A stretch of DNA of 64,000 nt from Botryllus schlosseri (Eukaryota): NCBI GenBank assembly GCA_051294905.1, contig CM119373.1, forward strand, positions 9,672,001-9,736,000, given 5' to 3'. The notes beneath the pieces were generated by a model. That model worked only from the letters and a program-made list of their open reading frames with translations, was not told the origin of the DNA and did not search any database. Made by a program: the position numbers and the translations under genes. Below are positions 14,901 to 60,116 of the stretch, piece after piece. Position 1 is the stretch's first letter. Each line of letters begins with the position of its first letter.

Positions 14901-17900
14901 CTCTAACCAATGCGTGTGTTTGCTACGCGGTACATGTTCTCGCGCCCGTTACGTAATCTCTCCGTCATTTAGAAAGGAAATTGGTCTTTTATCAGTGTAA
15001 AGACGTTAAAACCTCAATAACCAGTCGTGGAATGTTTGTTTAGGGGTAGGATTTCGCCAAAATTCTACCCGGCTGAAAGGAAAAGTCTGCGATGAAAGTC
15101 AAATTCTTCTGTGTTTACATGTAATTATGCACGCTCCATTTGACAGTGGATTTACCAAATCGGGATAATCAGATCTTCCGATAAAGACGAAAGGTCGTAA
15201 GAATATCTTTCGCGCTTACGGTGGAGACTTGAGACTTGGGATGAATATTTAAAGACATAATACATCTGAGACCCAAGCACAGATCGCGCGGAATACGAAT
15301 AAAGATACGAATTCGTCGTACTGCATAGGAATATCCTTACCTCTCCGTTGCAAAAGCAGTATATGATTGCGACGAAAAATCCCTAAAATAAAAACGGTAT
15401 TCTCATTAGATTTTCTGCCGAAGTTAGAGCGATGTATTCCATGTGTGGCTAGCACTACTTACATCTTGGCACATTCGATTTCGGTGAGTGATCAAATCGT
15501 AAACAAATATGGCTCCAAACAACAGGGCAGTCCAGTAAATTTCTTTTAGCCAATTGTTTTCAGTTGAAATGCTAGCAATAGCTACTATTAGGGTGCAAAT
15601 CAAAAATTAGGCTTTCAAAACTATTCCAATGGGCGTCAATGACTCGAATAAACCACTTGTTAATGGAGGATATGTCCCTGGGGTGGGGTGGGTTCTATTT
15701 TCGTGTAGGCCACCACCCGAATAAGGCAGAAAACGGTGGTAAACATATCCAAACCCAGCCCACCAGAGCCCTGGGATCTTTCTCCATAAGGATTGGTATA
15801 TATGAATCGTTTTCACTTATTGAAATGTGTGTGAATGCATAAATATAGTACCACAAACAGGCGATGGTTGGATTTGCAACACATTCTATGGTGGGAATCT
15901 GTGGCAAATACACGTATTTTTCAACCGTGTATTTACAGCGCACACGCTATGTATTGAGCATTTCCGTCAAAAAAGATTGGACCTGCGTCACGACAGCATC
16001 CTAATTCATTTCAGCCCTGATCGCGGATACATATTAGCGTCGGTTCACTAGAGGTATGCAGCTGATGGGCGCGTTGCGTGATAATTGTACCCAAATGGAT
16101 ACCTCCTCCAAACAAAATACTTTTGCTTTACGTCAAAGGATTCAACCACGATTTCAATAATCCGGTTAGAAATTAGTAAACAGTGCTTTAGTGTAAAGAG
16201 AAAACAGTTTCATTAGAAGTTGCTTTCCCATTGCCGTTTCATTGATGTGGACGCCTATCTATAGTAATTTCCATACACACATCTGATCATCTTTTGCGAT
16301 TGAATTTAGAATCACATTAGCGTTTTCAATTATATTCAGATGTATAGATATACATATAGTATCGTAGAGGTATTGTTTAATATATAAACCAGTTCACATT
16401 TACATCTGATGTGATCAAGGTTATTTGCTTTTAGAGGTCCTTACACAAACTAATTAATGACACATTTTGCTGAGTACGTCGTTGCTACAATTAGTGAATG
16501 GTGAGTTTAAACAGAAGTGCTGTAGGCTTACACATGACATTCATAAACTACTGTGTTTCCATCAATATAGGACGATTGGATATCGAGTCTATGTCCGCAT
16601 AACCTTCATACAGCGAAGTATACATAAAATATATAGCAGGACACTGCTTCCAATTGTATATCCTGTAGTGACTTTAAATGGAAGTTCAACGAAGCGAGTC
16701 TAATTTCATGCGACCTTGGGGTTCATTGCGAAGCTCGAGACCGTATCAAAACAGGTAAACATCCCTATTGGGCGATGCGGCTACACAAAGTACCGTGCGT
16801 TATATTGGAGTTTATTTGGGAGGAAGCCCTTGACTTTGAAGATGAGATATTGCACGCAATACTCCCAAAACGCGAGGCTCTGAGTGCACAGTTTTTCTGT
16901 AATGTATTGTTAATCCGTTTGATAAACATTCTGAGTTAGCAACTGTGGCAGTTACGACAAAATCAGCACTCGTCTTCCTTTGGTTGATTCCCTTGAGACC
17001 GCATTTTCAAGGTTATGTCAGCGTGGACTATTGATAAAATTGAAAACTAATGTTTTCGTTCTGATATGGGATGCATTAGTTGAGCAGAATTGAGGAACGG
17101 AATTGTATCTGGACTCGCATGTGTTCAAAGTGGGGCCTTCGGCTTTGGACTGTGTTTCAATTGCTAATGTATCAAAGTGAATTTCGGTATTTGACTTCAA
17201 AGTTTGCGTATTTCCGGTTGACAACATCGTGTGCCAGGGATGAATCACACATTGGCAGAATATAATACCGCAAATTCCAGTATCGCACCATAGCGTAACC
17301 AGGAATATACAAGCGACACGGCACACTGCTGATCAAAACGAAACCAGAATTGTATTCGGGTCCGGATATTGCATTACGAGATGAAATAGCATTTGTATCC
17401 GATTCAGATGGTAGGTTTATCGAACGCGATTGTCAACTACGGGTCTGCAGTAAAGGAAACGCCGACGAATTTGGGTATTGGTGTTCTGTGAAATTGATGT
17501 AGTATAGATAAAATATCATGTATCATTGACGACAGAGAGGTCAGTATCGAATTCGCTTACTCGTTCGACTTACTCAAGTGGGCACGTTTGTAGACTAAAT
17601 CTTCTTCTATCAGAGCAGTTTTTGAAGCGAAACTACTACCTTTTAGACTTACGATTTTTAAAATTAGAAAGCAGTTTTGTAATAAGTTTGTATCACTTTG
17701 ATAACTGTAATTTCCGTAAAAACCGCCTGACATATACACTGTACCACGGTATCTGAATATATTTTCAACGTCATTCTGCGTTTTACGTTGGTCGCTAAGA
17801 GAGACATTGCAATTTCGAAAATAGCCACCTCAGGAGAACTGCTTAAAGTTAGCAACCGGTCAACCGAATCTAAATTTTGAAGTTACTTACTTACTGTATT

Positions 17901-20900
17901 GCTTTTCAACCCTTTTATTTCATACTTCCATTTGAAGTAGTTTTGATTAGCCTTGGGTATTGGTAACTCTACTTGCAATTGAGTTGAAATGTAGGTCGTT
18001 ACATATACTTCGTCTTGAGTAGCTAGGCTGACTAATTTGAGAACCTCTCTTCGACACCGAACACCAATATTAGACAGTCGCCCTCTTGAATGACGAAATA
18101 CATTAACTAAGCTAGTGCGAGAAAGAACAACTGATCCTGACAGATATCACCCATACCCAAAGCGAGCGTATAATTATGTCTGCGCTAAACTCGAACTTGC
18201 GTATAGACAGGATGTGTAATCAGTAATCACTAAACACCAATTTACTCAGCCATCCAAAGTTGTTCTTATTTCGAGAGCAATCGATTACAATTACAGAGTA
18301 AATTTGGAATCGTCACAGTGGAAGGATTACAATTACTCAATGACTGCTTCTAACACGTTTTCGTAAAACTATTAGGAGATTTTAAAATATTTAATGACTC
18401 ATTTATCATATCCCATGCTGGCGCGCTGTGGGTATGTTTTGGTCTTTATTACAGGCCAACCGGGTACGCGGGAGCTGCCAAGGGCCTGCCAGCTAATCAT
18501 TTGGATGTGGCGTCGCAGTTTTAGTCTTTTTGGTTTATATTCATTCATTACATATTCTGAAAGCTTTATGCCTCACGAATGTTCGTTACGTCTCCATAGT
18601 AACGCATGTTCTGTTTACGCATGTAATTTTTTCGTCCACACTACATACACTACATCAAGGATCATATATATCATGGCCTATCATGTATATATATACCGTA
18701 TATATTAAAATCGCCCACATGATATGATAGGTTAATCCGTATAAAGGGGCTCATCCACTTTCTAACACTAACCTGGAACGAATTGAAGAAAAGATCGAAA
18801 TACATCCGAATATTCCACAGCATGCCGCTTTGTACGGAATCTGGCATACCGATGAATATAATGGCGTGGATCCCGAACATAAATATCAACACCAGCGTTG
18901 ACTTGGCAAGTTTTCTGTAACACACATCGCGATTAGCATTCGATTCGCCCATAGATAACGTCAGAACGCTGCCGAGTCAAACGCGACTGTAAATGTCAAT
19001 CAAAAACATAAACATGTCACGCACGAACGATTGTGAAGTTCAAAATTATCTTGTGTATTTCGACTCCATGGTAACGGGCATTCATGGTTAGGATTTTACG
19101 TCAGATCTTCACGCATCTGCGATTTGTACCACGAATGACTACGCAAAAGGTATTGTGGTTAGTACTATAGGGGGAATGAAATAATTAACGTCAGGATTGT
19201 CTCGAGATGAGCCGATATCGTAGATAGACACACTGCATAACCCGTTATCTCTTCATGGCATAAGCCTACATTATCGTTATTTGTTTTTGCGTTATCACCA
19301 GGAAGTAATCAGTTTTTTTAAGCAGACCATGGTAAAATATCATCTCCTATGTATGGATTAAAAGATATCGATATCGAAGCAAGCAGAACATAGCCGTAAC
19401 ATTGGTGTTAGTGATTCCAATGAAGGTTATTGTTGAAGGATGATTGATGATGACACTACCTGTACCTGTACTGCTTTCGGTTGTCGGTACCGCTGATGAC
19501 GCTGTTCTCCCGCATTTTGTACCAGAGCACGCGAATAATGTTGAGAAACAATATAAAATTGATCTGAAAAATCGTAGACACGGTAAGTTTATCTGGCGAG
19601 ATACATCGAAATCGAGCTGGGTTCAAACAGAATGGATATTCGCAAGGGGATGCAATAATTTCAACGATACAATGATGTGATATGTACAACCCGACGGGGG
19701 AAAGCAGTTATTACGTCATAATGTGATGGAGTACAAGTTTCCGAGGCAATAGCGCTCTTTACCCACATTTGACTACGTCAATTGTCAGGTATATAGTAGC
19801 GCCAGAGTGTAGTCAAAGATGGTGAGAAAATCACGTGACTCGCACTTGAATGACTTTGGTACATTTGCTATTGTCGATCCATCTTCGATAATGAAATTAC
19901 TATCCCAATCATTGTTTGACAACCTTGAAACGTCGCAGAGTATTGGAGGATATCATCACATTATACGTTTCGGCATCGTTTCACCAAGCTCGGTGTGTAA
20001 AACTATGTAATTCCACACAGACCAATACCAGCGTCCCGTAAAATCAGTGCTGACGATAGATCCACAATAACAAATGTACCAAAGTCATGCTCGTGTCAGT
20101 TGGTTTTTCCCAGTGTGCATACCTTTATTAAGAGCACTCTGGTAGCACGAATAACCAGTTCGTAAAAGGGGTGGCTACGGAGGCTTTTAGACGACCGTTC
20201 ATGACATTGATGATCTTTCTTACTTAGCTGGGGGGGGGGTGCCCTGTAATCGTAGCCAAAATGTGTGAGCCTACTTGTACATTAAACTCTCCGTTTGTAC
20301 CAACATGCCGAATTGAAAGGTGTCAAGGTTAATTTATTCTTTCATAATTAGAGTTAGAGTTTCAGTGTCGGCTGGTTACATTCATGCATGTATGATTGTA
20401 TGTGTACAATGAATAAGGTGATGAAAGGCGGGGATTTTACGAATTAGACCTCAAAGTGCGGCCTATGGGCACGTTAACATTCAACACATAACATAACGGC
20501 ATATAAGTCCGTGTTGATATAATAACTTGATTTATCGCAACTTCGAATCTGGAGACTATTCTAACCCAGGGTTCGAAGGCATAATGGATATCGACGCCTA
20601 TTACACAACGCACTCTTGCTTACATCTCAGGAACGAGTACTATTAAGGCCTCTCCGCATTTGGTGGAACGAGTGTTTTGATAGCCTAATAGGCGCCAGAG
20701 ATTTTACAGACTTTACAAACGAAAAATAAAACGACCTTAGCGTAAACCGCGGTTGAGTATTTTGGGATGGACCGATTACACAGCTTCGCCGGCTTTCACC
20801 AAAGAACTAACGTTGTTCTCGCTCGAGGGCCAGTCTGGGATGAGAGTAGCAAATCCCATTAATCAACTGAGCATACGGCATGGAGGGTCTTCAACATTTA

Positions 20901-23900
20901 CTCAGTGTGATATCGAGGGTGCTTGTGATATCTGAGAGGATCGGGAAGAAAGGCGAACAACCAAAAAAAATGAGGGAGAAAACTTTAAAGTCCTTCCCCG
21001 TTTCGAGTGCGTATGAAAAGGACGACCGCAGAGGTCAAATGCCGGAGCAGTGCGCCTTATGGACTGTACTTTGCGGCATGCTTGACATTGCCACAATTGA
21101 GTAATTGGGGTACGCAGCCAGTTTGGCGTCTACATAATGACGCAAACATAATACTTGTATGACATCATCATTGTACAACGGGAGCAACATAGTTAACCTA
21201 ACACCAGGTCCCTATAGCTACAGTTATATAGAATTGAAAGTAAAAAGACATTCCGTGAAATCAGATGAAGTAATATTGAATGATGATAATTAGGGCGATT
21301 ATTTTCACAAAATAAGTCCAAATTTTGTTAAAATTGTAGCGTTGGGTCGAAGAATACTCAAAATTGTTGACGAAGTCAAAATTTTATTGCAACCTGTATT
21401 TCGTTGAATCGTAGATGTTTGCACTGTCGGTGAACTTATCATTTGACATTCTACCTACAGCGTGTAGCCTACTTCATAGGCCTACCGTTGTAGACGGCCA
21501 CGACATTGTCTGCTTATTGTGACTCATGAACAGTCAAATGAAACACTTTCTACCAGAGAATGTAGGAAAGTATCTTTCGTTGTAATACAATTGTTTTTTA
21601 TTTCCGCTATAATACGTGATGGAACTACTGGAATTCTTCATAGGCCAGATTTCGTTAAAATAAAAAGTTTTCATGTATAATTTTGTCGGTTTTCAATTCA
21701 ATTTTTTCCGGTCAAACAACTTCGTACGGACAGACAGCTCCAACCAGAAATGAAGAGAAGTAGTGCAATTCTCACATTATGCATGAAAACACCTAATTTG
21801 CATACGTGAGGTAAAAATTTGGTCAAAAGTTAGTTTTAAAGGTCGAATAATGCTAGGATTTTGATTTCTTGGGTCAAATTCATCCGTTCTTTAGGTAAAA
21901 AATGTCCCTAGTGATAATACTATATATATAATATATATATATTCATTTAGAGAACGCGAGAGGCTGGATTCAAATCAACTTGTTTAATTTAGCATTGCGG
22001 AATATTAGTTTGCGACAGTGGTGGTCAACCTTTTGCGTTTGCGAACCGGTCAAATTTTAAAACGTATTTTACGAACTTTCATAAATCAACACAACGCAGC
22101 TCAAAACTAAAAGTGGCCTTCCGTTTAATGAGAAATTTCTGGGTATCTTTTTGATGTCACACCTGTTGTGCCTACAACGCAACGTCATGTTAAAACCACC
22201 AACTCGATTTGGATTACTATGGGTTTTCAAAAAATAGGAGTTCGTTGTTTGCTAGATTCTATGAAATAAATGCACCCAGATGAATTCAACTATAACAAAT
22301 ATTTGAATCATGGTGTTGATAATAATTATGTAATTATTAAACTGGTACCGCCCGCGTGCACACTTCACTACAACGTTACGCGATGAGCTATTTACCACGT
22401 TAGCAATGACGATTGGTCCATTATAAATCCATTTGTAGTGAAGTATCGCGACGTCCCAGCATCTGAAAGAAATAAAAATTACGGACGTATTAGCGTCATG
22501 CTAAATTGAATCGTCAATATCCTTTATGCTACAAATACTAACACTTCAAAATTTGATAATGAACTAATAAACCTTTGAATACGTGCCCGTGAATAGAATA
22601 CCGTGTGCATGCCTCTTTTTTACTTCGCCTAGGATAGGTGAGTGTCTGATTTCGAAGAAGACTCCAAGTCGTTTCGACACCTTCCTATCTTTCATTGCAT
22701 GGAATTGAATTGACTGCTACAGGTAACCTAGCTATTGCAAACCATAGTGCCAGGATATCAGTGCTTTGAACAGGAACTTCCAGTACCGTAGCCCCTACAG
22801 TCATGTCTCGATCTGTCCCGAGTGAAAAAGCCTCTCAGTTACTCATGTGTACTTCTTGCACCAGTGAACTTGCAAGAACGCCCAGCAGGTCGCACAGAAT
22901 AGATCATTCGTGAACTCAGTCATCGCATTGTCACGGAGGTATTTCAGATAGGTCTATCAGGTCACACCAGTCAATGATAAGCTGGCGTGAAATTCTCGAC
23001 ATTGTGAGTGTATAAATGTATGACGTAAACTGAAACATCTCGAGCGTAACACCAGCAGATATTTACATTGATAAAGTGCAACAAAAACAACTCTGCTCAA
23101 AGTATGGACGAACTGATGCTATCAGCTTGATTAACAGTGTGAAGTCTGACGTACTTGACACTAGACATACATATTCATATTATTATACCGCTAAAGCTAC
23201 AAATTACATCGAATTTAGTGGGTCACGGTATATTGCCAGAATTATTATAATTATTGAATAAAATCTAAGATGTTATCAAGTGCCAAGTTGATATCTATAT
23301 ATTCAAGCAGACGTAAGCAGAGTGTCCGCTTCGGTGGGTTAAAACGGCATAAAACACATGCAGCTGTTTCTCACCTACGACCATTTTATGTGGTCAAAAT
23401 CATTGTTTATAAAAACCAGAGACGACTTACTGTGTATCTGCTATCGTCGCTCGTACGATCGCCCACGGAACAACGAACAACACCGGTGCACCTGAGGAAG
23501 TATTTGATAGGTTAGGATCGTAACTTAACACCTGGGTTTCCAATTCAGCGAAGTTCGTTTGACGTAATGCGGAATTTGCGGGGGTTTATCGCCTTAACAA
23601 GCGATTGTTTTTAGTTCATCGTAGAAATTGTCATCACTGATTGAGAGCGAAAGTTAAGAATTACATATATGGCAGATATTTCACCAAATCGATTATATCG
23701 ACAAATGAGTGTGCACTTCACTTTTCTCCATTTTTTCATGCAACTTTTTTCGACTTTTCATGCAACTTTTTGCAAGTTTTGTCTATTTTCCATACAACTT
23801 TTTACTCGAAATATTTGGCATCATATGTTAATAGATCGCTTGAATATTTCGCTGTCGGTAAAATTTGAGGACCTTTCTGATGTGACGTACATTCAGGCTA

Positions 23901-26900
23901 GACCGCCGAAAATTATATGACCACTGGGTACTGGGTCAATTCTTTCAGGCTATCGATTTCGTTGAAGTCGCCAACACTGAGTTTTGCTACAGTGCCTTGG
24001 ATATGGACCGATACGATTATCTCATACCCTAGTAATTTCATGTAACTTGTCTGTAAATGCAACTTTTAGTGCAACTTTTGTGAAAAACAAGCGCAACTTT
24101 CCACGGATTTGCCTGCAACAAAAACTCGCCCTAGTGATAAGATAAGAAAGATATCCAAGGTGCCTAATGACAACCAATCCGCATATAGTCGTGGTCTTGT
24201 GAAAGCTTGTAACGAAAATGGGTCTGGCATCTAGTTGGAAGATCAGAAATGAAATTCATCAATGAGCAGAATGGCCGTAGCAACCACAACAACAACATCA
24301 TTTAGTCTATATGAGCCGTCGGCTGTATTTCTCTCATATGTTATCGTAGCTAACGGTAATTCTATTATATACGCAACGCATATATGATTATAACTAGGGC
24401 AAGTTTTTGCAACTTTTCTCTATTTTTCATGCCAAGTTTTACTGCGACTTTTATCCAATAATGCGTAAAAAATGTCAAGGATTGAGTTAAAAACATGCTA
24501 TAAACTATTTCTAGTATGGTTCTATTATCTTTGATTCGCATAACAAAATGCTATATAGCTGAATCTCACTGGTATCTATGACACGATGACTTGTAAGCAA
24601 GAAGTTCAGCTACCCCTGCCAAGCACGACCGTGCCCGAAAAATATGTAGGGGAGAGTGGGTAGGTATGGGCCACTAAATCTTACAAAGCTATAACTTGGC
24701 CAAACTTTGTCTAATATTCCTAAATTTCGGTATAGACTATCATTAGTTATCTGGCTAACTATTACTGGTAGAATTAAGCTAAAATACCCATGTATTTGGA
24801 AGTGACATCAAATTTTGTAACGATACATCATTTTTGTAAGTAAAAAATAGGCTCCGAGGTATGGGCCGGGGGGTAGTGAGGTATGGGCCGCTGTCTGTAC
24901 TGAATCAATAAATGCCATTCATATCCTATAAACCTCAACTCATGTCACAGTTACCAACTGTTTGTATATACTGATATAAAGCTGGGCTGAAAGTGGACAA
25001 TTCATATATTTCAATTCCAGTATTGATTGAAAGCCGTAACGCATAACGAAACAAGATAACTAAAGATATGTAACATGAAAATCACTATCAAATCATGCTT
25101 CTTTCGCCTCAACTACCCCATCAAATCCAAATGTCACAGCTCTGTCTCTTATTTAATTTGGAGTGACAAACCATGATACATATTAGAGCATATGATGACA
25201 TACTGTGCCAACAAACTTTTCTCCCCGTCATTAAAGACAGTATTGGAAAACGATTTTGAAATAGTTTTCATGTGAGACCCATCCCCTGGTTTTCCATATA
25301 CCTGTTTAATGTAGCTGTACCAATTTTGTACTGACGGCATTCTTCTCTCCCTCCCATGCTTTAACGTTTCATATTGCCAAGTTCAGATCTGATTCTGAAA
25401 ACTGGCTTTTTATGGGTTTCATGATTTACTTTCAAGTGATTGTATATGGGAGGGATAAGACCAACACCTTCTGTATTCTAGAGAAAAATATATTTAATAG
25501 GATCATTCAAATATTGATTTCAGGTATATGTTATGCTGTCCCATACCCCAGCCTATTGAGGTATGGGCCGGCCCATACCGCAACCTGCTAAAAGGCCCAT
25601 ACCTCAAACACTCCATCTTGGGGATTCTTACCATAATTTCAAGATCCGAGAGATTGACAAAGCATTAAAACTATACTCTATAGGCAGCATATTTCTATAG
25701 CTTTCACACCATATATAAGTCTAATCCAAACATGCACATATGCGGACTCAAACCCAAATTCCCTATTTTCAAATAAATTTACTTTAGGCCGAAAAAATTA
25801 TATATCTCTAGCTGAGTCAAAAACTCCGCTGGCCTCATGGCTGTGAGTAACATGGGTGAGTCTGGAGCCTTTTACTAACAATCACAGAGCTTGGCAACCA
25901 TATGGGATGTCACAGTCATCAGATATGGCAGTGGCCCACACCTCAACAGTGGCCCATACCTACCCACTCTCCCCTAAATAAATCGCTTTAATAATTCTGT
26001 CGTTTAAATTTGAAATAGATTCCCATTTCAACAACGCCCAGGCGAGACCGCCGAATATCACATTTCACAGGGTCACCATTTTCAGGCTATTGATTGTGTT
26101 AAAATTGCCAAGAGTGAGTTTTTCTGTAATGCTCTGGGTAAAGTTCGCAGACCTAGGCGGTTTGGGGCGAGGGTTATCGTCATGCCGTTTGTCGCATTGC
26201 GTAATTTTCTTACTGTGTGCCGGGAAAAATTTAATTTTGGGCGGTTACGTCAGGTCGTTAAATGTCGAAGTCACAAATTTGACATCTCTGCAGAGGAACT
26301 AGGTTATACAACGGAACCTTTCGGCAACCTCATACTCTAATACAACAAAAATTATAAATGCAACTTTTTACCTCAACTTTAATTAAAATCAAATGCAACT
26401 TTCTCGCGATTTTAATTCAGCAACAACTTGCCATAATTATAACTAATCCGACTAAGATTAGACGAAATAGTGTCAACACAATACCAAGTCCGCAGTAATG
26501 CCTTGTAGAAAATAAACATGGATGGTATAGTCAAGAAAACAAGTAACAACAGTATTTCACGTTGCCATGACCTAATCTCGTACTAATCTCCTTCGGATCA
26601 CTAGGAGTTGACACAGCTCGGCAACTCACCCCATCCGATGAGGATGAATTTCCAGAAGTACTTCTTGCCGGAAAACACAGCGAGGAATATCAAGCTGTGC
26701 AGATGGAGAGCCTCGACAAGAATCCAGTAATAGTTGGTCGCCACGAAGTAATGGAAGAGCGTCATCACGAACTTGCAACCCACCTTAACAATGAACAACA
26801 GTGACGTGAAATGAAATGAGGCACATTCTACTGAATTCGACAATATCGATGCTTACAGTTAGGACAACGAGTAGGGCCGAGAAAAAACGATTATTCTAGT

Positions 26901-28586
26901 ACTCGAATACGAATGAAAACTAATAGTAATGAGGGCGTGATGATTTCGTCGGGTATCGAAAATTATGCGCTCTTTGCCACCAACTGTTATTTCAGGGGCG
27001 GGCAACATAAGACCCGCAGAGAGTTTCTGCCCTAAAAGTGAGATTCGAATCGGAAAGTAGTGAACAATTATGGCGTCACAGAATGAATCCAAGTTTGCAA
27101 ACCTGAGAAAGTTGGTCATAAAAATACTTGTTGTGTTCGGGTCTACATACATTTACGAGCAAACATTTTCGACCATGATCATTAACAAGACAAGGCTACG
27201 TTCCAATATAACTGATGTTCACGTGTAGTCTAAGGGTTTATACCCGACATGCAGTCAGAGTTGAAAGAACTTATTGACAACATTGATCGACCACAGAAGT
27301 CTCCTTGACTTCAACAGCTATTGAAATACATAACATTCATCAATTCATTAAACACAGTTTTGGTATCTATGCTTTAAACTTTGATATACATGAACGCTAT
27401 TCCAAAATAACTTCAAGATTAGCTGCTAGGTTGAAATGACCAGGCTGGCCGTTATATTGGTCCATGCATGTGTCGACTTGCGATCATAGTCAAAGGTGTC
27501 GTCAGAAGCGTTACGAGTTGTTATTACATTGGCCGCAACTTATACTTGTGGATATGTATTTTCGGCACCCGTTCCTATCAAATCGACGGCGCGGAGTTTC
27601 AAGACATGATCCGCGTATTTCAAGAAAGGCAGCTACAGTTAATATTTGCACAAGATGGATGGAGGTTGCACGATAATAGAGCTAAATTTGAACTAAAACT
27701 TGGAGGTCCGCGGGGTCCGTGACGGTTAAGAGAGTGTCCGTTAAGACAAAAAGGTTGAGAACCACTGGCCCAGTACTTAAAGTGTCGAAATGAAAGCGTC
27801 ATTTGTCCTGTATGCGCAATAGAAAACTTGGTACGTGTATTTGCTGGAAATATCACCTTGTGACTTGGAAGAAATGGAAATACTTGAGAAACTAGGCTTA
27901 TTCATTTAGTTTTATGTGCTCTACGTATCCTCATCTACAAGACCCACATCGACGCCAAGTTCCGACTGGTGTTGTATGCGAGGTTAAGCTACAGTCTTAT
28001 CCTTGCTCGTCAATCTCACCAATAGCAATATCTGAATAAATTCATTCTCCCTTACGAGGTAACTTCGAGTATGCGAATCCTGCACTTGCAACATCAGCTC
28101 ATCCACTATTTGGTCTTGTTGTGACGCACTCAAATCCAGGATACCCGAGCCAACGAAGAGTACTCTGTCCTTGATGAAGATAATTATGGCGCGCAACATG
28201 AACGACGCAAATAGATGCAGGTGAATGTAGTTTCTTGTACAGTGAAGCTTTCTGTAATAAATAAACACAGACGATGTAGGGGTAAAGTCGGCGGGCCATG
28301 CAGCAAGTCAGAAAAGTTTCCTCTTTTCCAAATTAAATTCTAATTCGAAATATAGTTACACATTATTTCCAAATTAGACTAGAATTAGAATCCCGGGATA
28401 CGCAAAAACTGGGATGCTGAATGAAGTTAGGCTCATACCAAATCAAAGTTCATTCGAATAAGCATGACAATGGCAAATGTCTGTACAGCAAGTTCGGCTC
28501 GCTGCGAACCATACAGTTCTCCTGTAGTCTTTACAGGTAACGCATATAATAGATTAGAAATAAAGCCACGGAACCAGTGGCATAGC

Positions 28587-34600: not shown

Positions 34601-37600
34601 CAACGGTGACGGTTCCTCGCACCCAAGGGCACTGGAATCGAGCGCGACGCAAATCGATGACATATCACCCTACCCCAGTTCGTCCTGTATAATCCACAAT
34701 GCTTAGTAATGTGAGTTATCCGACCGTTAGCGGAATCGCGATTACCCTTATTATACACGGAGACTTATAAGAGCGATAAAATGATGGCTGGTGGATCTCT
34801 TCTCGGGATTTAGAACTACTATCTTCGAGTAGACACAAATTGCAATTAGGATGGACGCACATTTCGCGAAAGAATAAGGGTCTTCAGGACCTGATAAGAG
34901 CAATAGTGGACATGTTCATTTGACGGTGAATAATAAATATAGACCTCTATCCAACTCTGATATAGGGCTATACCTTTGAATTCACCGGCGCAACTACACA
35001 CGCAAACACAAAGTAACAAATTTCGGCCCGAACGGCGCACAGCTACGCTCGACTAATACATAACAACACTACTAGGAGATTCAGCGTGGCGGGCTCGAGT
35101 CACATTTTGACCAAGGGAAGTATACAATGGACGGGGAATCTGCGAAAAACCAGCAAACTAAATTATGACCGAAACATTACTTGCACAGGTCGCACCGCCA
35201 ATATACTATTATATAAGTATGATGGTTTGAGTTAAGGTCCGGCGTCGGATGACTTGTTAATTCGAATGCCGAATATATTTATACTAGCTATCGTCGATAA
35301 GACTGACAGAAGGGCACGGCGAAGGGCTAGGCATAGCGCACAGTAACATCAGCTTGTGTATCTAACATGATTTGTGTACACTGGACGTGTACATTCTGCC
35401 TACCGGCAGCGAGTTTAGCCAACAGCAGAGAAGTATGTACGTTAGGGTAAAAAAAATGATAGCTAGCATATAATAAGCTCCAGGGAAATCATTGGCAAGA
35501 CGCGTACATCCGACGTATGCTAAAAATAGAGTTACAACATAACGTCACTCTTTGTACCTCATATACACCACATGCTGATGGAATAATATATAAAAGGATG
35601 CTAATTAGGCTGCAGTAAGAAACGTATACGCAGAGTTCCGCGAATTTATTTCGATCATCAGTGCACCTGCTGCCTCATCACCAAAACATAACTGACCCAT
35701 TACGAAGAGAAAATCTATGACATTCCTCAGTCGCAAGTGCTTGCCAGTTTACTCTGCACTCCTGCAGTGTGTGTAAATATGTGCAAATGAAAATACTGTC
35801 TCGTACACAGCTGAAGGAATTATTCCGAGCTATCAGTAGGTGACATCTTAGAATACTCACCGAAAATACGCCAAGATGAAAGTTGCGAATGTCAAGGCCA
35901 CCAAAGTGCAAGCGTATCCGACCGTGTACAGCTGCACTAGCCTTTTCATATTAGGCTGCAAAATAACAAGGAAATGTGTTAATCAAAGCCGCCAGAACAT
36001 TTTATGATATGTAAATTGCCTCCAAATGGTATAGCTAATCAGAACCATAAATCAGCCCCGGCCTGGATCGAATTGGCCAATTTTGATTGCCCCGATTCGA
36101 ATATTTATGCAAGCAACGGAATCACTGCCGATTCTTGCGAGTTCGTTAAAGAAATAATATGAATTTATAACAAATAGGGTTGTTGTAAGAGTATTGTATG
36201 CGAAAAGCGGGACAGATTACTACACTCTTTGAAGCATTATTAAGAAACACGTAAGTCATGCATTTACCGCAAGCAATGACGCAGCAGTACACATAATTCA
36301 AGCAGATCATTCCGAAATGAAATGAAACAAGATTTTGGTTTGCGATGGCATTGATATGAGACCCGCATGTTGTCCAAGTAGAGACATTGCAAAATGGCGT
36401 GTATGCTATTAATGTGGGCACGAGTTTTTCTCAATGTATAGCAATATTGTTGGCGTATAGAATAAAGTATATATAATACACATTGAAGACTGTTCGCTCA
36501 TTTGCGTTAGAAGCGGTGGATAAAAATAATTATACTCTCCATTATTTTACGATGTTGAACGCCCCTGGTTTTATTTCTGGACACATCCATTCTTTCAATT
36601 CACAAATTTCTGGATGTGGATTTGGAATGATTTAATGTTTACCAATTAAACTGCCTGTATCCCGGAACAAGCTAATGATTGTGCTATTGTACTCGCGTAG
36701 TTTCGAATATTAGAATATGTATGGAAAGAGATTACGTTTGATGGAAAGTGCTCAAGGCCTAATTACTGAACAGGCGAACATATAAGCAATTATTCAAAAA
36801 ACAAATATTGGCTCTTCTATGTTGGCCACTTGATGGGGTTTCATTTGTTCTAGCTATAGATCGTTTGCATATACAGCGTTAACGATCGAACGCATGTGAT
36901 TATCGACATTTCAAGCTTAGTGAAACGCAAGGTCGTCACACTCACGGTCCCGTGTTTCAAGTTATTCAACAATTCATCTTCCGACGGGATCATGGAATGA
37001 CACGCTGCATAATAAGTCCACGTCTTGTTCATTTCTTGACTAAAATGCCACTGGCCGGTTTCCGTGCAATGTCTCTGTGCTACAGCTATACAGGCGGAAG
37101 GTTAATGCAACCGGTTACATAGGATTAGATGCAATGAAGTATTGTGAAGTGAGATCGATGCAGGCGTGAGGTTATAGAGAAAAAATGAGTCAAACAGTGT
37201 GCACCATATTTACGTGAGTCCGTTTGCAGTTCCCCATCCAATGCGGTAACAAAGTCGTCCGACGCGTCATACCAAAACGAAAAATTCATGGCACCACATG
37301 AGATTTTCGGAATTTTAACGATAAGCGGATAGCACATAATGCAAATAAGGGATATATATGCTTGCACGCAAGAAATTTTATGAACGTTCCACACCCAAAC
37401 CATTCAGATAGGTTAGATGAGTGCGTTTGGATACCAATCAAATAGAAAATCGTAAATCCTGCATTGTAAGATGAGACGTCTGTGTTTGTAGCTATATAAA
37501 TAATTAATGGCCCGCCTTTCAGTTTAGTGTGACAGTAACCTTCGGCGTTTGGTGGGTTACGGAATTGATACGTTATCAATCTCGATAATCTGGATTACTT

Positions 37601-40600: not shown

Positions 40601-43600
40601 TCAAGAGAAGCATTGTTGTGATTACTTTGATTCGACATTTGTTAATTCGTTCCCGTTAAAGTATACGCTACTCGTACGCAAACAGAGAGGGCTCTTTAGG
40701 CCTACCGTGTCACACAAAGTAAGCGTATCCTTGACATGTGCGGGCGGAGAATATATATCTTCGTTGCAAGGTGGCCACGATCAAACTTCCATGCAAAGTC
40801 AATCGCGTTTACAAGTCACGACTAGACGAGCATTAACTCATAACATCTAAGTAAGCACTCATGATAATATTTAGCTTTCTATATTCGATCTGTCATCACT
40901 AGGATTATACTTCGCTCTGGTATTTATTAACATAGCAGTTCAAATACGCCACGGAAAACTTTTCTTTGGACTTTAATCCTAATGGATGCGATTGGTAGGA
41001 GATATATGTCGTTTTCAATGTTTATTTCGCCGAAATATCAACTCCAAGTGCCTTAACAAATGAGCTTCGAGGATGCAAACATAACGACAATGACCCCCCC
41101 CCCCAATTCAGTGACGTAGAAGCTCTGCGTTGTACGCTTCAGTGACTATGTTTTTAGGAAAATAACAGTAATTTTCAAATTCTGAGTTTCAGGCGTCAGT
41201 GAAAATTGTTTGGAAGCTATCTTCAAGTTTAAACTTTTCTGATTTTTTAATATAACACGTTTCGGTTGCCAGATCAACAAGAAAAATCACAGCAACAAAC
41301 ATATATTAATGGCACAGCATGATAGCAGTCACAGCAGAGATTGAAATGAGATATACATTGAAAATGTGTGTTCAAGTTCAAGCCCCACACGTTGCACTCC
41401 GCGGGTAATTAGGACCGTATGCAGTGAGTGTCACAACACCATGCAGAAAGCCGAATCGTAGAACGGGTGACATGGTGACATTGACTTATGGCACATATCA
41501 ACAGAAATTCTCATTTCAAGTCCGGTACTACTGAAGCGCGGCTACATTGCTAAGCCTTCATCATGCCCATCTTACTCTGCCATGCTGTAATATCTCCTCG
41601 TATTCCCGAGATTCCATAAAATCAGTCGGGGTGCAGTCCATATAGATACCAGATTTTGGATTTATACGCCATGTTCCGTTCGTATCACAAAATCTTTTGA
41701 CGAATTCTACATTATGTATATGAGATTATCTTGGGCAATATCGCATTGAAGTACACTGCTAAATAATAAAATAGGTATCGCCCCTCTACCATCAATAGCG
41801 AAATATCTTGCATAATGTAATCAACCCCGTCGTAGATTCATAGACACGACTTTATTTCCAAAATAATGATAAAATATTGACTACACTTGACTTGTGATAG
41901 ATCGTTCCGACTTCCGCGCATTTTAGTTGTGATACCAAGATTGTTGTTTGTTATGTTGTTCGTGAAACGTTAAAAGCCTACGCTATTTCGTCAGGTGGCA
42001 TATAGTATGCACCTATTACCTAGTCACATATGAGCGTTTGCACGTGTTTGTGGTTTAGCGATAGATTTCTGATACATGATTTGTGACCATAGGCAACACC
42101 CGTCTGATTCACCCCTAGACTAGCTCGGTTCGTAGAGAGAGTGAGATACTAAGTATGTCGTGACTACCGTATTTGAATCAAGGCGCATATTTCGTGACTA
42201 TTTTCGTAACGACAATGCGCAAGCGTATGCAACAGTCTGTCAATTTAATCATACAGGCAATACATTACGGACAACTCCTATCCAATACCTTGACTCTAGT
42301 TTGAGCGGGAAATATGGGATAATGGTCTACCTGAGTCTACCTGATAATGTAAGCAAAACAGCTGGGCTGTCAAAGCTAAATTCGTAAATTTAGACAATGC
42401 AATTCATACGTGGTTGCATAGAACATATCAAAGGTATATGTGTAGGTTTTGATCACTTAGTTCCAAGAGACCATTTTACATTGAACCTATATGTGGCATT
42501 CCCATATGATTAGTGCTGTAAGAGTTTAGATTAAATCGTTTATCATAATTATTTACATTTCGTTATAAATTTTTACACTGTTTTTTAGGTTAAACGACTA
42601 TATGTGGTTAGTTAGGAGGGAAGTTCATGCGCACTTACCGTCGTGGTTAAAATCTGCGACGTACTGCGGGCAACCAATTGAAACCGGTCCAGGAGGGCTC
42701 TGAGGCCAGCAGAGTATATTGTCCCATTCCGCCGGACAATAGACTTCCAGCGGCTCGCCTAAAATAATTGACAACAGGAATTCAAAAGGGCTGGCAGCTC
42801 GTAATAATAGGAACAGCGCTCGCTGAAGGTACATTGACTTTTGTCAAATGATCTTTTTCTAGACAATTTCGACTTGAAATTGCATAAAATAGCGAAAAAT
42901 TCTAGGTAGGTATTCTGTTGGAGCCAGATATTGGTATGAACCGCAGTACCGGTACCTGGCATATATTTTCTTAGGAGTATAACGTCCGATATCTATGTTA
43001 TTTCTATGCCAATCATCATTATTCAAGTTACACAGGCGAGTGGTTTCAGTCGGTCACGCACATTGATTCGCGTGTATGTCCGGCCCCAAACCCACCCACA
43101 ATTTCAACAACGTATCGAGTTTGGCCCGCAGTAGAGTCGGGCTCTCGTAAGATAGGAAAACTATTATCAGCGGTCAGCGCCATTTGCATCCCCAGTTCCG
43201 AGAGACAATTTTCACCATAAATCCGTGAAAGATGAGCAAACGTTTCACGATATATGCATAAATTCGTTCGGCATCACAGTTGAAACAGCAAGCTCGTGAG
43301 AGCACATGTCACTAGCAATTAACGACGTTCGTTTGACAATAAAAAAGCATAGAGGATGGCGCCAGCGTAACGAACGGTATATACAAATACAAATACTCTT
43401 ATTTTCACGAATAGGAAATGACCGTTCCGCAATGCCAACCATTCAACTGTTCGTAACGTAGAACGATACACCGGACGAAGCCTGGTCCATTTTTCATATT
43501 GCGGTATGGTATGGCATGATATGAAACTACGGTATAGTATGGAACGATATTTCACTATGAAATATGGAAATGTACAAATATGGTATGGTATGGAAATTTC

Positions 43601-45509
43601 CCAAGTATGGTATGGAATCGTTTTCCATACTTCCCTACTTTCCCATACTTTGACAGTTTTGACAGAAACATGACAATGACCCTACTTTCGATTTGTCAAA
43701 TTGATTGCATACCTCAGAAAATCACTCACTGTCAATAACGATTGTTCGGTTTATTATAAATTTTATCAGCTCAACACACCACAAAAATTGCGAAGCAATG
43801 AAAAGGGAAGGTGTCGAAACGACGTGGAGTAATCTTTGAAATCAGACACCCACATTGGCCTGGGCGATGTAAAGAGGAGGCATGCGCATTGCACATGCAC
43901 ACTGAATGAAAAGTAAAAGAGGATAATATAGAAAAGCAGGTGACAAAAATGAGGTGGCATGTCACGGAAGGCGAGATCGATAGGTCAGGTTGTGGTCCGG
44001 TAATCTTGAGGACCGACCATTATTCATTTAGTAGAAATTGCTTGTATTTCGACCGGAATGTGGACGTGGACAATTGGACATGCTCGTTGACTGTCGGATA
44101 GCCGACGGGATACTGTTCCACACGTCAGGCCCGGCATATTTGATAGATGATCTTTTCGGTCGATCATATGATAATTGGACGACGGGGACGCGCGTTTGTC
44201 GTACTTGTGCGCTTTTGATTCCGAGGTAAAGAAGTCATTGAAATATTCGGGGCAATAACCAGAGGGAACGGATACATAACCTTGTCAATTTCTAGTTTCC
44301 GCATATCTTTTATGTTTAGGACACCGAATATCTTCAGCAGCGACTTTTTGGATGGACAATCAGGCCCCTTTGGAGCCTTAGCTATGATATGGAGTACATC
44401 ACGTTGTAGCTTTTGCAGTGGCTCGATTGCAGTTTTACTGGCAGCCCCGGAGGATGACATATTGTAATTTCGAATGGATTAAGGATTTAAAAAGTATCAG
44501 AAGAACCAAGGCTGGCATGCAGCGTCTAATGCCGTAGAACAGGCCACACTTCGGTGATAATATAGTGTCCAGTGACTGAATATGACTGTTTCAGGACATG
44601 TCCGAGTCAAGTAAAACCCCGAGGTATTTGGCATTTTTCGTGTTTGAAATGGACTGACCAGCGATGTCGTCGTTTTTTTAAAATTTACTGTCACCTATTG
44701 GGATTTCGAGGCCTTTATGCAAAGGTTATTTTGGGCCGTCCATTCATGCACTTTGAGAATTTGGTCACTAGTGAGGGCATCCACCGTTGCTGTCGAAGAT
44801 GTGGAAGATAGGAGGTGATTATCATCAGCGAACAGTATGGTGCTCAATGGGGAGATTGCAAAAATGTCGTTGACATATAAAGTGAAGAGGACCGGGCCAA
44901 GTACTGAGCCTTGGGATACGTCACATGTAACAAGAGTTGTAATGACTCGAGTCATGAGTCTACTAATTTTCTGATGACTCTGTACGACTGTGGTTGTTGC
45001 TGTGGTTGCTAAGTATATTGGTAGTCCATGGGTGCCGTAAGCCATAAAAGTGGAGAACCACCGCGCTAGTGTGCGGCGAAGTATTTGTCATTTTCAAAGG
45101 GTGCCGCGGGGTCAAAAAGGTTGAGAACCTCTGCACCAACTATTTGGAATATCGGTGTTGAAGTAACATGTGTCGGGCCCATGACATGAGTTTTGTGACA
45201 AACCGCCCAAGTCATGTATGTCAAAGCATACTAATTCATTGCGTAACGTGTGCGCGAAAGAACGCACAATTGACGTTATCATGAGACTAAGACGATGACA
45301 TTGACACTGTATAGTTAACATGTCCGGGCATGATTATATTAAAAGTTCCCTTGACTGAATTTTTAAACTATTTGAATGTTTGCATTGCAGTACTCACCAT
45401 CGTCGCCAGTTGGAACCGGGGCGTTCATCGTAGTCCTACGGCATTCCTCCTTGGCTTTAAATAACGCCTGGATCAATTCTTCCTGTCCGATATGCGAACT
45501 CCCCGCCAT
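8641..45509 (-). CDS. PTH1R-like: PTH/PTHrP receptor-like class B1 (secretin family) GPCR, 14 coding exons, 610 aa; probable invertebrate co-ortholog of PTH1R/PTH2R/PTH3R
   Basis: Manual join of 45509-45398, 42758-42639, 37085-36946, 35955-35861, 28251-28056, 26783-26630, 23491-23431, 22462-22396, 19563-19466, 18914-18773, 15382-15341, 11684-11550, 11191-11060, 8979-8641 = 1833 nt. All introns are GT-AG with matching phases. Shows six ECD cysteines, [37 protein letters not shown] and [20 protein letters not shown]. The long ECL1 and TM7 string are PTHR-like. Confidence 0.93.
9862..10726. mobile_element. hAT element of the TAGGGCGATT family (opposite orientation to 60117-61323), in the last receptor intron
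   Basis: Ends TAGGGCGATTTTT ... AAAATCGCCCCA; TSD CTTATGAG/CTTATGAC (7/8). Confidence 0.85.
11060..11191 (-). CDS. PTH1R-like: PTHR-like exon 13 (Ser-rich tail): [44 protein letters not shown]
   Basis: atgtttcag| and CAG|gtgcga; 132 nt, phase 0-0, open, GC-richer than flanks. No family motif, so less certain. Confidence 0.7.
11550..11684 (-). CDS. PTH1R-like: PTHR-like exon 12 (helix 8, proximal tail): [45 protein letters not shown]
   Basis: ccttctcag| and |gtatga; 135 nt, phase 0-0; VQxE-x-K-x-x-W-x-R helix-8 motif. Confidence 0.92.
13149..13707. mobile_element. hAT MITE of the GACTCGA-repeat family
   Basis: TIR CAGGGT(C/T)GTAA; TSD GAATGGGC/TAATGGGC (7/8). Confidence 0.88.
15341..15382 (-). 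CDS. PTH1R-like: PTHR-like exon 11 (TM7): [14 protein letters not shown]
   Basis: tttattttag| and |gtaagg; 42 nt; peptide identical to the human PTH1R string as I recall it. Confidence 0.96.
18773..18914 (-). CDS. PTH1R-like: PTHR-like exon 10 (TM6, ECL3, TM7 start): [47 protein letters not shown]
   Basis: gttacag| and |gttagt; 142 nt. Confidence 0.95.
19466..19563 (-). CDS. PTH1R-like: PTHR-like exon 9 (TM5, ICL3): [33 protein letters not shown]
   Basis: tttttcag| acceptor. Donor is AG|gtacag, or an alternative AG|gtagtg 6 nt downstream (exon end 19460). Confidence 0.93.
19803..20141. mobile_element. Small TIR element of uncertain superfamily
   Basis: CAGAGTG...CACTCTG ends plus an internal 30-bp inverted repeat (ATGACTTTGGTACATTTG...GATC); possible 7-bp TSD GTAGCGC/GTAGCAC. 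Confidence 0.55.
21291..21910. mobile_element. hAT element of the TAGGGCGATT family
   Basis: Ends TAGGGCGATT ... AATGTCCCTA; TSD ATGATAAT/GTGATAAT (7/8); homologous to 60117-61323. Confidence 0.85.
21919..21941. repeat. Interrupted (TA)n microsatellite
   Basis: Read directly. Confidence 0.85.
22396..22462 (-). CDS. PTH1R-like: PTHR-like exon 8 (ECL2, start of TM5): [22 protein letters not shown]
   Basis: tttctttcag| and |gtaaat; 67 nt; CWD...KWI...PI motif. Confidence 0.94.
23431..23491 (-). CDS. PTH1R-like: PTHR-like exon 7 (TM4): [20 protein letters not shown]
   Basis: ttcctcag| and |gtaagt; 61 nt, phase 1-2; WG-x-P...W-x-x-VRAT motif. Confidence 0.94.
24649..25974. mobile_element. Tc1/mariner superfamily (pogo/Fot1-like) deletion derivative, 1326 bp
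   Basis: Perfect 27-bp TIR GGGGAGAGTGGGTAGGTATGGGCCACT; TA TSD; GTATGGGCC subterminal repeats. Confidence 0.9.
25149..25422 (-). pseudogene. Remnant of a pogo-type transposase DNA-binding region (psq-HTH plus CENP-B-HTH-like)
   Basis: [13 protein letters not shown] / [20 protein letters not shown] / [27 protein letters not shown] across a stop and frameshifts. Confidence 0.7.
26630..26783 (-). CDS. PTH1R-like: PTHR-like exon 6 (TM3, ICL2)
   Basis: [51 protein letters not shown]; ttgttaag| and |gtgagt; 154 nt. Confidence 0.96.
28056..28251 (-). CDS. PTH1R-like: PTHR-like exon 5 (ICL1, TM2, long ECL1)
   Basis: [31 protein letters not shown]; ttattacag| and |gtaagg; 196 nt. Confidence 0.96.
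28593..28637. repeat. (AG)22 microsatellite
   Basis: Read directly. Confidence 0.97.
29782..30344. mobile_element. Old hAT-like MITE with TTTAAAAC repeats
   Basis: Imperfect TIR TAGGGTT(GC/AA)ATTTAAAACAA; TSD not recognisable. Confidence 0.55.
31924..32490. mobile_element. hAT Charlie-like element; a second partial copy starts at 26993
   Basis: TIR CAGGG(G/A)CGGGCAAC; internal homology with about 26993-27400; no clear TSD. Confidence 0.7.
33951..34235. mobile_element. hAT Charlie/Buster-like MITE (285 bp), inserted just after a B-box-like GGGTTCAATCCC
   Basis: Perfect 16-bp TIR CAGAGGTTCTCAACCT; exact TSD ATTTAGAC. Confidence 0.92.
35861..35955 (-). CDS. PTH1R-like: PTHR-like exon 4 (TM1): [32 protein letters not shown]
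   Basis: YTVGY...ILAYFR; ttttgcag| and |gtgagt; 95 nt. Not in the ORF track. Confidence 0.95.
36946..37085 (-). CDS. PTH1R-like: PTHR-like exon 3 (end of ECD): [47 protein letters not shown]
   Basis: RxC-x-x-x-G-x-W...NxTW-x-x-Y-x-x-C motif; tgtatag| and |gtgagt; 140 nt, phase 1-0. Confidence 0.93.
37925..38052 (-). mobile_element. Partial, older copy of the same SINE (receptor intron)
   Basis: CCGACTTGTAGCACGGCCCACTTCTAG matches the SINE body in reverse. Confidence 0.65.
38890..39327. mobile_element. hAT MITE of the TAGGGCAAG / AAGTTGCA-repeat family
   Basis: TIR TAGGGCAA; exact TSD GTAATAAC. Confidence 0.9.
42639..42758 (-). CDS. PTH1R-like: PTHR-like exon 2 (hormone-binding domain): [39 protein letters not shown]
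   Basis: C-x-x-x-WD-x-x-x-CWP...CP-x-Y-x-x-DFNH motif; ttattttag| and |gtaagt; 120 nt, phase 1-1. Confidence 0.95.
43495..43650. repeat. TATGG/CCATA pentamer array, probably the subterminal region of an old hAT element
   Basis: Multiple GGTATGG units followed by inverted CCATAC units. Confidence 0.6.
44164..44935 (-). pseudogene. Decayed non-LTR retrotransposon reverse transcriptase (CR1/L2 group), 5'-truncated, in receptor intron 1
   Basis: [37 protein letters not shown] and [11 protein letters not shown] motifs, broken by stops and frameshifts. Confidence 0.92.
45398..45509 (-). CDS. PTH1R-like: PTHR-like coding exon 1 (ECD alpha-helix, first Cys): [37 protein letters not shown]
   Basis: [14 protein letters not shown] resembles human PTH1R EEQIFLLHRAQAQC. 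Start context caacATGG, donor G|gtgagt (phase 1), upstream acceptor ctctcttaccag| at 45549. Confidence 0.85.
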
Positions 45510-46527
45510 GTTGGGAGTTTATCAAAATATTGCTACAGATTTCTTATTCCTGGTAAGAGAGGCGAGCGCCGGTTAACAACGTTGGAAATAGCGGATTTTA
45601 TCGGATTTCCTGCGGATTGGCCTGCCAAACACTTTAATGATTCACATCAACGTCGTTAATATTGCTTTGCTGTGGACTCTCGCCAATGAGTAACTCAAAG
45701 CGCATCAACTGTAATATCGAGCAATAATGTACACTTTAAATCATTCGTACATCGCTGCAGCTAAACCTGACTATACGCAGGTACATGTAATTGTACATGT
45801 ACTGTACAGTTTATAAAGTCGGTATGATACCGGTATCAAATCAGCATCATGCAACGTGACCGCCGGGTTTATAGAAAAACAGCCGCCGCGTGTTGAGGCT
45901 CCTACGCCCGGGAAATCAAGGTCGGAATACCGACGTATACAAACACTGATTTGAAGCCTTCGCCAGTCGCCACACCTCCACCAGTACATGTTATTACAGC
46001 TGATAACAATGTAAAGCTTTATACTTCGCCGTTGATTCATCGAATACAATCGAACATGACCCCTAATTCAAGAATTCGACCGTCATATTCCGTATGTAAC
46101 GACTACGACTCACGTTGCCGATGTGAACTGATGCGACCGTTCTGACAACGTACCATTGACGGAACGCGCCGAGAGCCCACAAGCTGAGTGGTTTGCGCAT
46201 TTTTTTCTATAGGTACTTGGTTCGCAGTTGTCTAATGTATGTCGCATTTGAAAAAAAATGTTATCTGCTGGATGGATATGATACACACTCAGATATATAT
46301 TTATGTATAAACAATCTGACCTTTCGGTGAATATGATTTGACGCTACGAACTATGCGCAGATTATTCTGCGTCCGCTGTTCACATACTGTAACAAAACAT
46401 ATTTTGCCGACGCAAAAGATGAGATGAGATGAGTTGAGATAGTACTGTCTATATTTATAATTTTTATATTATTGCGGTAATTATGATTCCCGGAAATATC
46501 ATGTTCTACTATTACGTGCACGCTTAC

Positions 46528-46718
46528 GAATGAAGACACGCGGCACTATAGATCTGTAACTGTTTATACCAAATAACATGACCATAGATGTAATTATCAG
46601 ATAGCACTGACTGTGAGTAAACTTGCTGCTGTTGTGGTCTGCAGCCCACTGTGCACTGCCTGATCAGATGAGTGCGGTGTGTGATGTGAAGTATTGTTTT
46701 AATCGAGAGCAGCGGCAA
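46528..46718 (-). other. Candidate non-coding 5' exon of the receptor gene
   Basis: cgcctttttag| acceptor and TTC|gtaagc donor, 191 nt; no homology support. Confidence 0.3.
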
Positions 46719-55392: not shown

Positions 55393-55451
55393 GTGAGTTT
55401 AGGCTTGACTTCATTTATCAATTTTTTCACCTCTATACCCAATTTTCCTAG

Positions 55452-60097: not shown

Positions 60098-60116
60098 ACA
60101 ATGGAACTGTCATCAT

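Follow-up and report, generated by a model that had tools for sequence, protein, structure and literature searches.

A 64,000-nucleotide (nt) stretch of the Botryllus schlosseri genome (assembly GCA_051294905.1, contig CM119373.1, positions 9,672,001 to 9,736,000; hereafter the window) carries on its minus strand a gene for a parathyroid hormone (PTH)-receptor-like class B1 G-protein-coupled receptor (GPCR). On balance, this receptor is probably signal-less by nature: its translation would start at the Met codon at 45509, the join to a signal exon would have been lost in the lineage, and the first transmembrane segment (TM1) would serve as signal anchor. Translation is predicted to begin at this Met whichever leader is joined at the acceptor at 45549. 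That the gene is expressed, which leader its mRNA carries and how its ectodomain is translocated are matters that we infer.

The evidence for the start lies in the first coding exon (E1). The first base of E1 is 45549, 40 nt upstream of the ATG at 45509-45507 (minus strand, caacATGG), and the pyrimidine fraction of its acceptor over positions −20 to −3 is 0.78, equal to that of the best internal acceptor in the gene. Two stops in frame with the ATG lie between them, TGA at 45524-45522 and TAA at 45521-45519; the initial annotation had described exactly this arrangement, and it is exact on the minus-strand sequence. The other two frames of the leader are likewise closed on three-frame translation, one by a TAA at codon 2 and one by a TAG. 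Since all three frames are closed, a coding exon joined at 45549 cannot read in frame into E1, and the earlier claim that no upstream coding exon can be used at this strong acceptor holds for every frame. The leader contains no ATG, and there is no AG between the in-frame TAA and the ATG. The start context has A at −3 and G at +4, as it does in seven of the eight related genes or complementary DNAs (cDNAs) examined, the exception being the P0054 cDNA. At its other end, E1 finishes at 45398 in phase 1 (GATG/gtgagt, donor GT at 45397-45396) and forms an in-frame junction with the exon that begins at 42758. Among the tandem paralogues described below, paralogue C retains the 45549 acceptor (ttctctcaccag) and paralogue B has lost it by deletion.

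The rest of the gene is that of a complete receptor. There are 14 exons, running from 45509 down to 8641, with the frame intact and a product of 607 or 610 amino acids; all introns are GT-AG with consistent phases, as judged from stop-to-stop frames and from tblastn with relatives. Identification as a PTH-receptor-type class B1 GPCR, proposed from the start, is borne out by domain and structure matches. Pfam PF00002 (7tm_2) matches three separate exons (1e-16, 5e-10 and 1e-7) and PF02793 (HRM) gives a match of 4.4e-10, all above the curated cut-offs, and PTH1R chains are the best solved-structure match for the ectodomain exon at 42758, ahead of PTH2R, GLP-2R and GHRHR. E1 alone had no match among solved structures with phmmer, so its homology rests on tunicate intermediates; it aligns with E1 of the tunicate receptor P0287 at 45% identity (E = 0.001). 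The six ectodomain cysteines, at residues 23, 45, 54, 67, 84 and 106, align with those of PTH1R. The TM6 P-x-x-G hinge looked for as a mark of class B1 is absent, exon 18914-18773 encoding L-I-F-M-F-G in its place.

The N-terminus of the predicted product is hydrophilic and leads into the ectodomain helix, as had been noticed at the outset: the best 9-residue Kyte-Doolittle mean over the first 37 residues is 0.84. By hydropathy, TM1 (residues ~133-155) is the earliest hydrophobic segment. No hydrophobic stretch was found before it, the 19-residue hydropathy mean staying at or below 0.26 across the first 120 residues. A cleavable signal peptide is usual for class B1 receptors, and is not part of any formal definition of the class. 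With no hydrophobic stretch, closed frames and no signal exon found, none is predicted for this receptor.

How do the relatives of this gene begin? Relatives were collected by searching the TM3-TM4 exon against 1.8 billion representatives and then by a word-indexed search. Among database proteins, tunicate PTH2R-like receptors come nearest, ahead of vertebrate PTH1R, and the closest relative available is the “PTH2R-like” protein of Styela clava, with 58-59% identity over the whole protein; a protein search started from the Styela ectodomain region found nothing beyond the query. In a quick tree with no other class B1 outgroup, the tunicate clade is sister to the vertebrate PTH receptors with 100% support in the Shimodaira–Hasegawa-like approximate likelihood ratio test (SH-aLRT). 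Closest similarity and clade thus both place the gene in the PTH receptor subfamily. The annotated tunicate PTH2R-like genes, namely Styela clava XP_039274255/56, Ciona intestinalis XP_018671172 (Ciona_b) and XP_009861154 (Ciona_a), and Clavelina lepadiformis XP_076813071, share with the window’s gene the exon plan, 53-59% whole-protein identity, a mutually exclusive pair of ectodomain exons and a conserved Met in E1.

At the N-terminus, these relatives fall into two forms. The short form starts at the conserved Met; it is seen in all three RefSeq isoforms of Styela clava and in Ciona_b, P0003 and P0054. The long form, found in Ciona_a, Clavelina, Phallusia and three metatranscriptome cDNAs (P0155, P0156 and P0287), is longer by 37-70 residues, in which a hydrophilic stretch leads into a hydrophobic segment of 22-25 residues with an invariant proline; this segment ends just before the conserved Met-Ala-Asp-Asp-Gly. 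Unlike the window’s gene, Ciona_a, Clavelina and Phallusia carry an upstream exon that adds 55-70 residues, including the hydrophobic segment. In long-form genes, the E1 acceptor lies 3 nt before the Met (tag/ACG ATG in Clavelina, cag/ACG ATG in Ciona_a), with the hydrophobic segment on upstream exons; a second Clavelina annotation makes these upstream exons a separate 67-residue “transmembrane protein”. In Ciona_b, the AG of this ancestral acceptor is now AA, and an in-frame TGA lies four codons before the Met with no AG after it. Styela clava likewise has an in-frame TGA four codons upstream of the homologous Met with no AG after it. Three genes, those of the window, Styela clava and Ciona_b, thus have an in-frame stop between the Met and the nearest AG upstream of it, which makes the long form impossible at the ancestral junction in all three. 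An in-frame stop immediately precedes the Met in L001 and L015 as well, two cDNA contigs of the short form that come from marine metatranscriptomes.

This comparison changes what can be said about the signal-less state. The initial annotation had presented it as a property of the receptor type, which does not hold: other tunicate orthologues carry a hydrophobic upstream exon joined 3 nt before the Met. Comparison with relatives bears out the short start for Styela clava and Ciona_b, which are annotated as beginning at the homologous Met, and contradicts it for Ciona_a, Clavelina and Phallusia, which carry the extension. Judging from these genes, the signal was lost in particular lineages or paralogues, or else the signal-less state is one of two alternatives. 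Public RefSeq models of Styela and Ciona already show the short start. We found no description of the two forms, of the switch of an AG 3 bases before the Met or of the stolidobranch loss in the literature searched, the coverage of which was incomplete.

The vertebrate receptors suggest where the long form came from. In human PTH1R, the signal peptide lies on a separate first exon and, to our knowledge, vertebrate PTH receptors always carry a cleavable signal peptide. The vertebrate receptors PTH1R, PTH2R and PTH3R resemble the window’s gene in being class B1, in having an HRM ectodomain with six cysteines and in sharing about 39-48% identity; they differ from it in that no signal peptide can be attached at its ancestral junction and in that it is without the long E2 loop of tetrapod PTH1R. 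The signal peptide of the chicken PTH receptor is on a separate first exon (PMC3483286), and the TIP39 gene was not found in Ciona (PMC3483286). E1 starts at an equivalent residue in PTH1R and in tunicates (V-DADD-V.T.EEQ versus M-ADDG-ITT.EE), the tunicate M-ADDG-ITT..EE aligning on the start of the mature vertebrate protein, V-DADD-VLTKEE. The tunicate hydrophobic segment aligns on the vertebrate signal peptide, including a shared Cys-Cys, which in a region of low complexity is no more than suggestive. The simplest reading of these alignments is that the tunicate extension exon and the exon for the vertebrate signal peptide descend from one exon. There would then have been an ancestral signal exon, tunicates would have gained a Met right at its junction with E1, and some genes would later have lost the junction.

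Several observations weigh against a naturally signal-less receptor. First, AGs downstream of the ATG would give first exon bases at 45498 (phase 2), 45482 (phase 0) and 45467 (phase 0), and a matrix built from the gene’s 14 acceptors placed these internal AGs no lower than the 45549 site. Second, a short signal exon with no homology to the known ones would escape the profile search described below. Third, three bulk RNA sequencing (RNA-seq) runs, of which 6-13% each was read and placed on 42600-48599 beside one DNA run, had no reads over 45400-45599 or upstream of it, and the next exon received only 1-2. Fourth, the stop in L001 and L015 is a TAG that is itself a possible acceptor, and these contigs may hold a retained intron, which makes them weak support for a closed start. 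Fifth, the TM6 proline is lost (PxxG to FMFG) in all three tandem copies, and the clade may be functionally unusual.

The RNA result is a matter of low expression in the fraction of each sample that was read, and is neutral on acceptor use; none of the indexed RNA runs contains the E1 region. The only part of the 6-kilobase (kb) stretch with substantial RNA depth, in all three runs and on both strands, is 43800-44400 in intron 1. This is a fragment of a high-copy retrotransposon, with a DNA word depth thousands of times the single-copy level.

The strongest alternative, which we nonetheless consider unlikely, is that an undetected upstream signal exon is spliced to a weak internal acceptor (45482, 45467 or 45498), so that the apparent start is a genomic artefact. 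The internal AGs are in usable phases and are not ranked below the 45549 site by the matrix, the long-form relatives show that an upstream signal exon is ancestral, and the zero depth over E1 is what this alternative would also allow. The matrix itself is noisy at 14 sites, with a leave-one-out range of −1.5 to 8.1, and pyrimidine content and the −3 base were used instead. By these measures, the internal AGs are without a pyrimidine tract: their pyrimidine fractions are 0.33-0.44, versus 0.50-0.78 in the gene’s 14 acceptors, and the 45498 site has G at −3. Moreover, 15 nt containing the 45482 site are missing in paralogue C, and the Styela clava RefSeq models likewise begin at the Met.

A missed exon was also searched for. 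A profile hidden Markov model (HMM) built from six known extensions scores the Ciona_a and Clavelina exons at 51 and 49 bits, which overstates its sensitivity because both exons are in its training set. It found nothing better than E = 0.7 in the window, in the 20 kb beyond it or in the regions upstream of paralogues B and C, and the same was true of the 10 kb upstream of the Styela gene and the 8 kb upstream of Ciona_b. A search of the extension alignment against the whole genome gave a sole result, at chance level and on another contig, and a tblastx comparison of the upstream region with its counterparts in Styela and Clavelina gave no match. No exon resembling the extension was thus found in the ~38 kb upstream or genome-wide. 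The region upstream of E1 was also scanned for open reading frames (ORFs) that combine an ATG, a donor and a hydrophobic stretch, and both hydrophobic candidates failed. The first, 63514-63393, has a phase-2 donor that fits the AG at 45500-45499. The hydrophobic half of this ORF is a repeat with more than 200 genomic copies, its donor is poor, and it sits in an 11-kb tandemly duplicated unit. The second, at about 46200-46152 (16 residues, good donor), is only weakly hydrophobic and its peptide is not conserved in the paralogues: A and B are out of frame with each other owing to a 1-nt indel, the peptide encoded in B lacks hydrophobic character, and C has a deletion across the donor region. Splicing of this second ORF to the 45549 acceptor would give a 24-codon upstream ORF. 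The second ORF lies within a block that is 73-77% identical among the three tandem paralogues. Because this block is conserved at the nucleotide level only, and not as a peptide, it more likely serves as a promoter or as a first exon that is not translated.

Could copy A, the window’s gene, be a silent or decaying duplicate, such that the loss of its signal is part of a loss of function and says nothing about biogenesis? It is one of three same-strand tandem PTH-receptor-like copies spanning C3:9555252-9717509, with B at C3:9598464-9671050 and C at C3:9555252-9582556. Between B and C, at C3:9589864-9590153, is a stray copy of the last exon with stops in it. In Styela clava, the locus retrieved carries only one annotated gene of this type. 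The triplication, together with the lost TM6 proline and the absence of RNA reads on E1 with only 1-2 on the next exon, would fit decay. Against this, all 14 exons are in an intact frame and six of six ectodomain cysteines are present. The ratio of nonsynonymous to synonymous substitution rates (dN/dS) is 0.40 for A versus B and 0.34 for A versus C, with 0.35-0.47 in the ectodomain and 0.27-0.31 in the seven-transmembrane (7TM) core. In a quick maximum-likelihood tree, the terminal branch of copy A is very short, by far the shortest of the three, and B and C share a long branch. Low dN/dS and a short branch make copy A look like the conservative, constrained copy. The TM6 proline has become Phe in all three paralogues (B at C3:9602180-9602398, C at C3:9562969-9563169), in contrast to the nine other tunicate sequences, which have L-I-P-M-F-G. 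The window’s genome thus differs from the tunicate relatives compared both in its three tandem copies and in having Phe in each of them; being common to all three, the change is older than the triplication and is no defect peculiar to copy A. Just 6-13% of each run was read and such receptors are usually lowly expressed.

An independent DNA run, X2, also bears on decay. It has the same species label, even depth and an allele that is ~5-7% different, and its contigs cover 45450-45691; the comparison is of the substitutions listed, with contig indels outside it. Among the differences listed, three fall in E1 coding sequence (45438, 45480 and 45486), and none of them changes an amino acid. A decaying duplicate is therefore an improbable account of copy A.

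If the receptor is made from Met 45509, how would it reach the membrane? The leader joined at 45549 would be a non-coding 5′ exon or a trans-spliced leader, and the Met, in strong context, would be the first AUG, giving a product whose first element is the ectodomain helix and which lacks a cleavable signal peptide. Trans-spliced leaders are common in ascidians. The long-form cDNA P0287 (L016) has TTTTATTTGAATAAG at positions 1-15, which resembles the 16-nt Ciona-type spliced leader. This 5′ start suggests that its mRNA is trans-spliced upstream of the extension-encoding exon, and that genes of this family are able to be trans-spliced. The Ciona-type leader has only 30 near-matches in the genome versus 11 for a control, and was rejected as the leader of this animal. 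The GAATAAG that directly follows the 45549 acceptor is probably there by chance.

Once synthesized, the ectodomain of ~130 residues and six cysteines would form no disulfides in the reducing cytosol and would stay unfolded before transfer. TM1 would then engage the endoplasmic reticulum (ER) membrane as a reverse signal anchor, and the ectodomain would be carried across, probably less efficiently than with a signal peptide. The ectodomain must reach the ER lumen, given purifying selection, the kept disulfide cysteines and a glycosylation sequon. TM1 as a reverse signal anchor is, by analogy, the likeliest route. There is precedent for this part of the initial annotation’s proposal. Signal-less GLP-1R and CRF1R are still synthesized, processed and present at the surface at a reduced level, and TM1 has been proposed as their signal anchor (PMC4240022 and work cited there). 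Delta-SP GLP-1R and delta-SP CRF1R resemble the window’s gene in class B1 synthesis, glycosylation and surface arrival without a cleaved signal peptide (PMC4240022). They are laboratory deletions, whereas the absence in the window’s gene would be natural and fixed, so the likeness is one of mechanism and not of family. CRF2(a)R, unlike the window’s gene, still has its signal sequence, as an uncleaved pseudo signal peptide (PMC4240022).

It is also conceivable, if doubtful, that the short protein is made and mostly misinserted, and would then be retained or degraded, act intracellularly or modulate its paralogues. Removal of the signal peptide does lower the expression of GLP-1R and CRF1R (PMC4240022), and paralogue B hints that better targeting has perhaps been favoured. 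In B, the ATG used by A and C is now GCG (C3:9670964-9671170; locus L009 at about 8964-9170, minus strand, just left of the window), and a deletion of ~95 base pairs (bp) has removed the acceptor region and brought an upstream ATG in frame, adding a 17-residue leader before the same helix. This leader (M-R, eight hydrophobic residues, S-D-A-P-N-A-A) looks like a newly made signal peptide. However, the ectodomain dN/dS values are hard to square with misinsertion, six cysteines and a sequon are sensible only in the ER lumen or outside the cell, and the short form recurs in Styela and Ciona_b. An error of assembly at the stops or in the ATG context, a caveat that the initial annotation had raised, is very improbable: within 45480-45527 the X2 differences listed are at 45480, 45486, 45515, 45518 and 45527, with none at 45519-45524, so that, as far as the listed substitutions show, the two stops are not an assembly slip, and paralogue C and Styela clava have the same architecture.

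What would a naturally signal-less receptor mean more broadly? First, class B1 signal peptides are treated as near-universal, and the debate on whether they are needed has relied solely on GLP-1R, CRF1R and similar receptors from which the signal was deleted. A signal-less lineage beside signal-keeping relatives, or even beside a sister paralogue as with Ciona_a and Ciona_b, would be a matched natural pair, in which the part played by the signal peptide in targeting, expression level and ectodomain folding could be asked. Second, tunicate PTH-type receptors may exist in two states, with the long extension possibly an uncleaved anchor that makes an eight-span protein and the stolidobranchs (this genome and Styela) in the signal-less state only; we hold this broader scheme at slightly less than an even prospect. 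If it is true, stolidobranchs would have natural class B1 receptors that export a 130-residue, three-disulfide ectodomain by TM1 alone. Third, there is a caution for annotation: whether the first Met of tunicate E1 is internal or the start is decided by a single AG three bases upstream. The features on which these arguments draw are collected in Table 1.

Table 1. Features of the PTH-receptor-like gene (copy A) and of its upstream region, in window coordinates.
Feature	Position	Strand	Details
Upstream conserved block	46003..46265	-	73-77% among three tandem paralogues; candidate promoter or non-coding 5′ exon
Acceptor pyrimidine tract and AG	45550..45572	-	AG at 45551-45550; sequence ctcgcctctcttaccAG/G
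Untranslated leader, 40 nt	45510..45549	-	Three-frame translation; in-frame TGA TAA at 45524-45519
Coding part of exon E1, Met1-Asp37 and 1 nt	45398..45509	-	Ectodomain N-terminal helix, Cys23
Ectodomain exon	42639..42758	-	3 of 6 ectodomain cysteines; Pfam HRM 4.4e-10; PTH1R PDB match 8e-10
Ectodomain exon, variant a	41576..41706	-	Styela clava isoform X1, 78% over core
Ectodomain exon, variant b	36946..37085	-	NKT sequon; Styela clava isoform X2, 51%
TM1 exon	35861..35955	-	First hydrophobic segment (hydropathy), presumed signal anchor
Ten remaining coding exons, TM2 to C-terminal tail	8641..28251	-	58-59% identity to Styela clava; Pfam 7tm_2 match in three of the ten
Exons TM2 onward, part 1	28251-28056, 26783-26630, 23491-23431, 22462-22396, 19563-19466	-	
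Exons TM2 onward, part 2	18914-18773, 15382-15341, 11684-11550, 11191-11060, 8979-8641 (including stop)	-	

Two further features of the locus stand apart from the question of the signal peptide. Variants a and b of the ectodomain exon (41706-41576 and 37085-36946) are mutually exclusive. They match Styela clava isoforms X1 and X2, and the Ciona isoforms X1 and X2 differ in the equivalent segment; the pair therefore appears to be of long standing in tunicates, and through it a single gene would supply two ligand-binding domains. At the far end of the window, the stretch 52898-63884 (10,987 bp) is repeated head to tail at C3:9736001-9746987, with 99.98% identity and a period of 11,103 bp. Either the stretch was duplicated in tandem very recently or the duplication was made in the assembly; the repeated stretch includes most of a CACTA element with a cargo gene.

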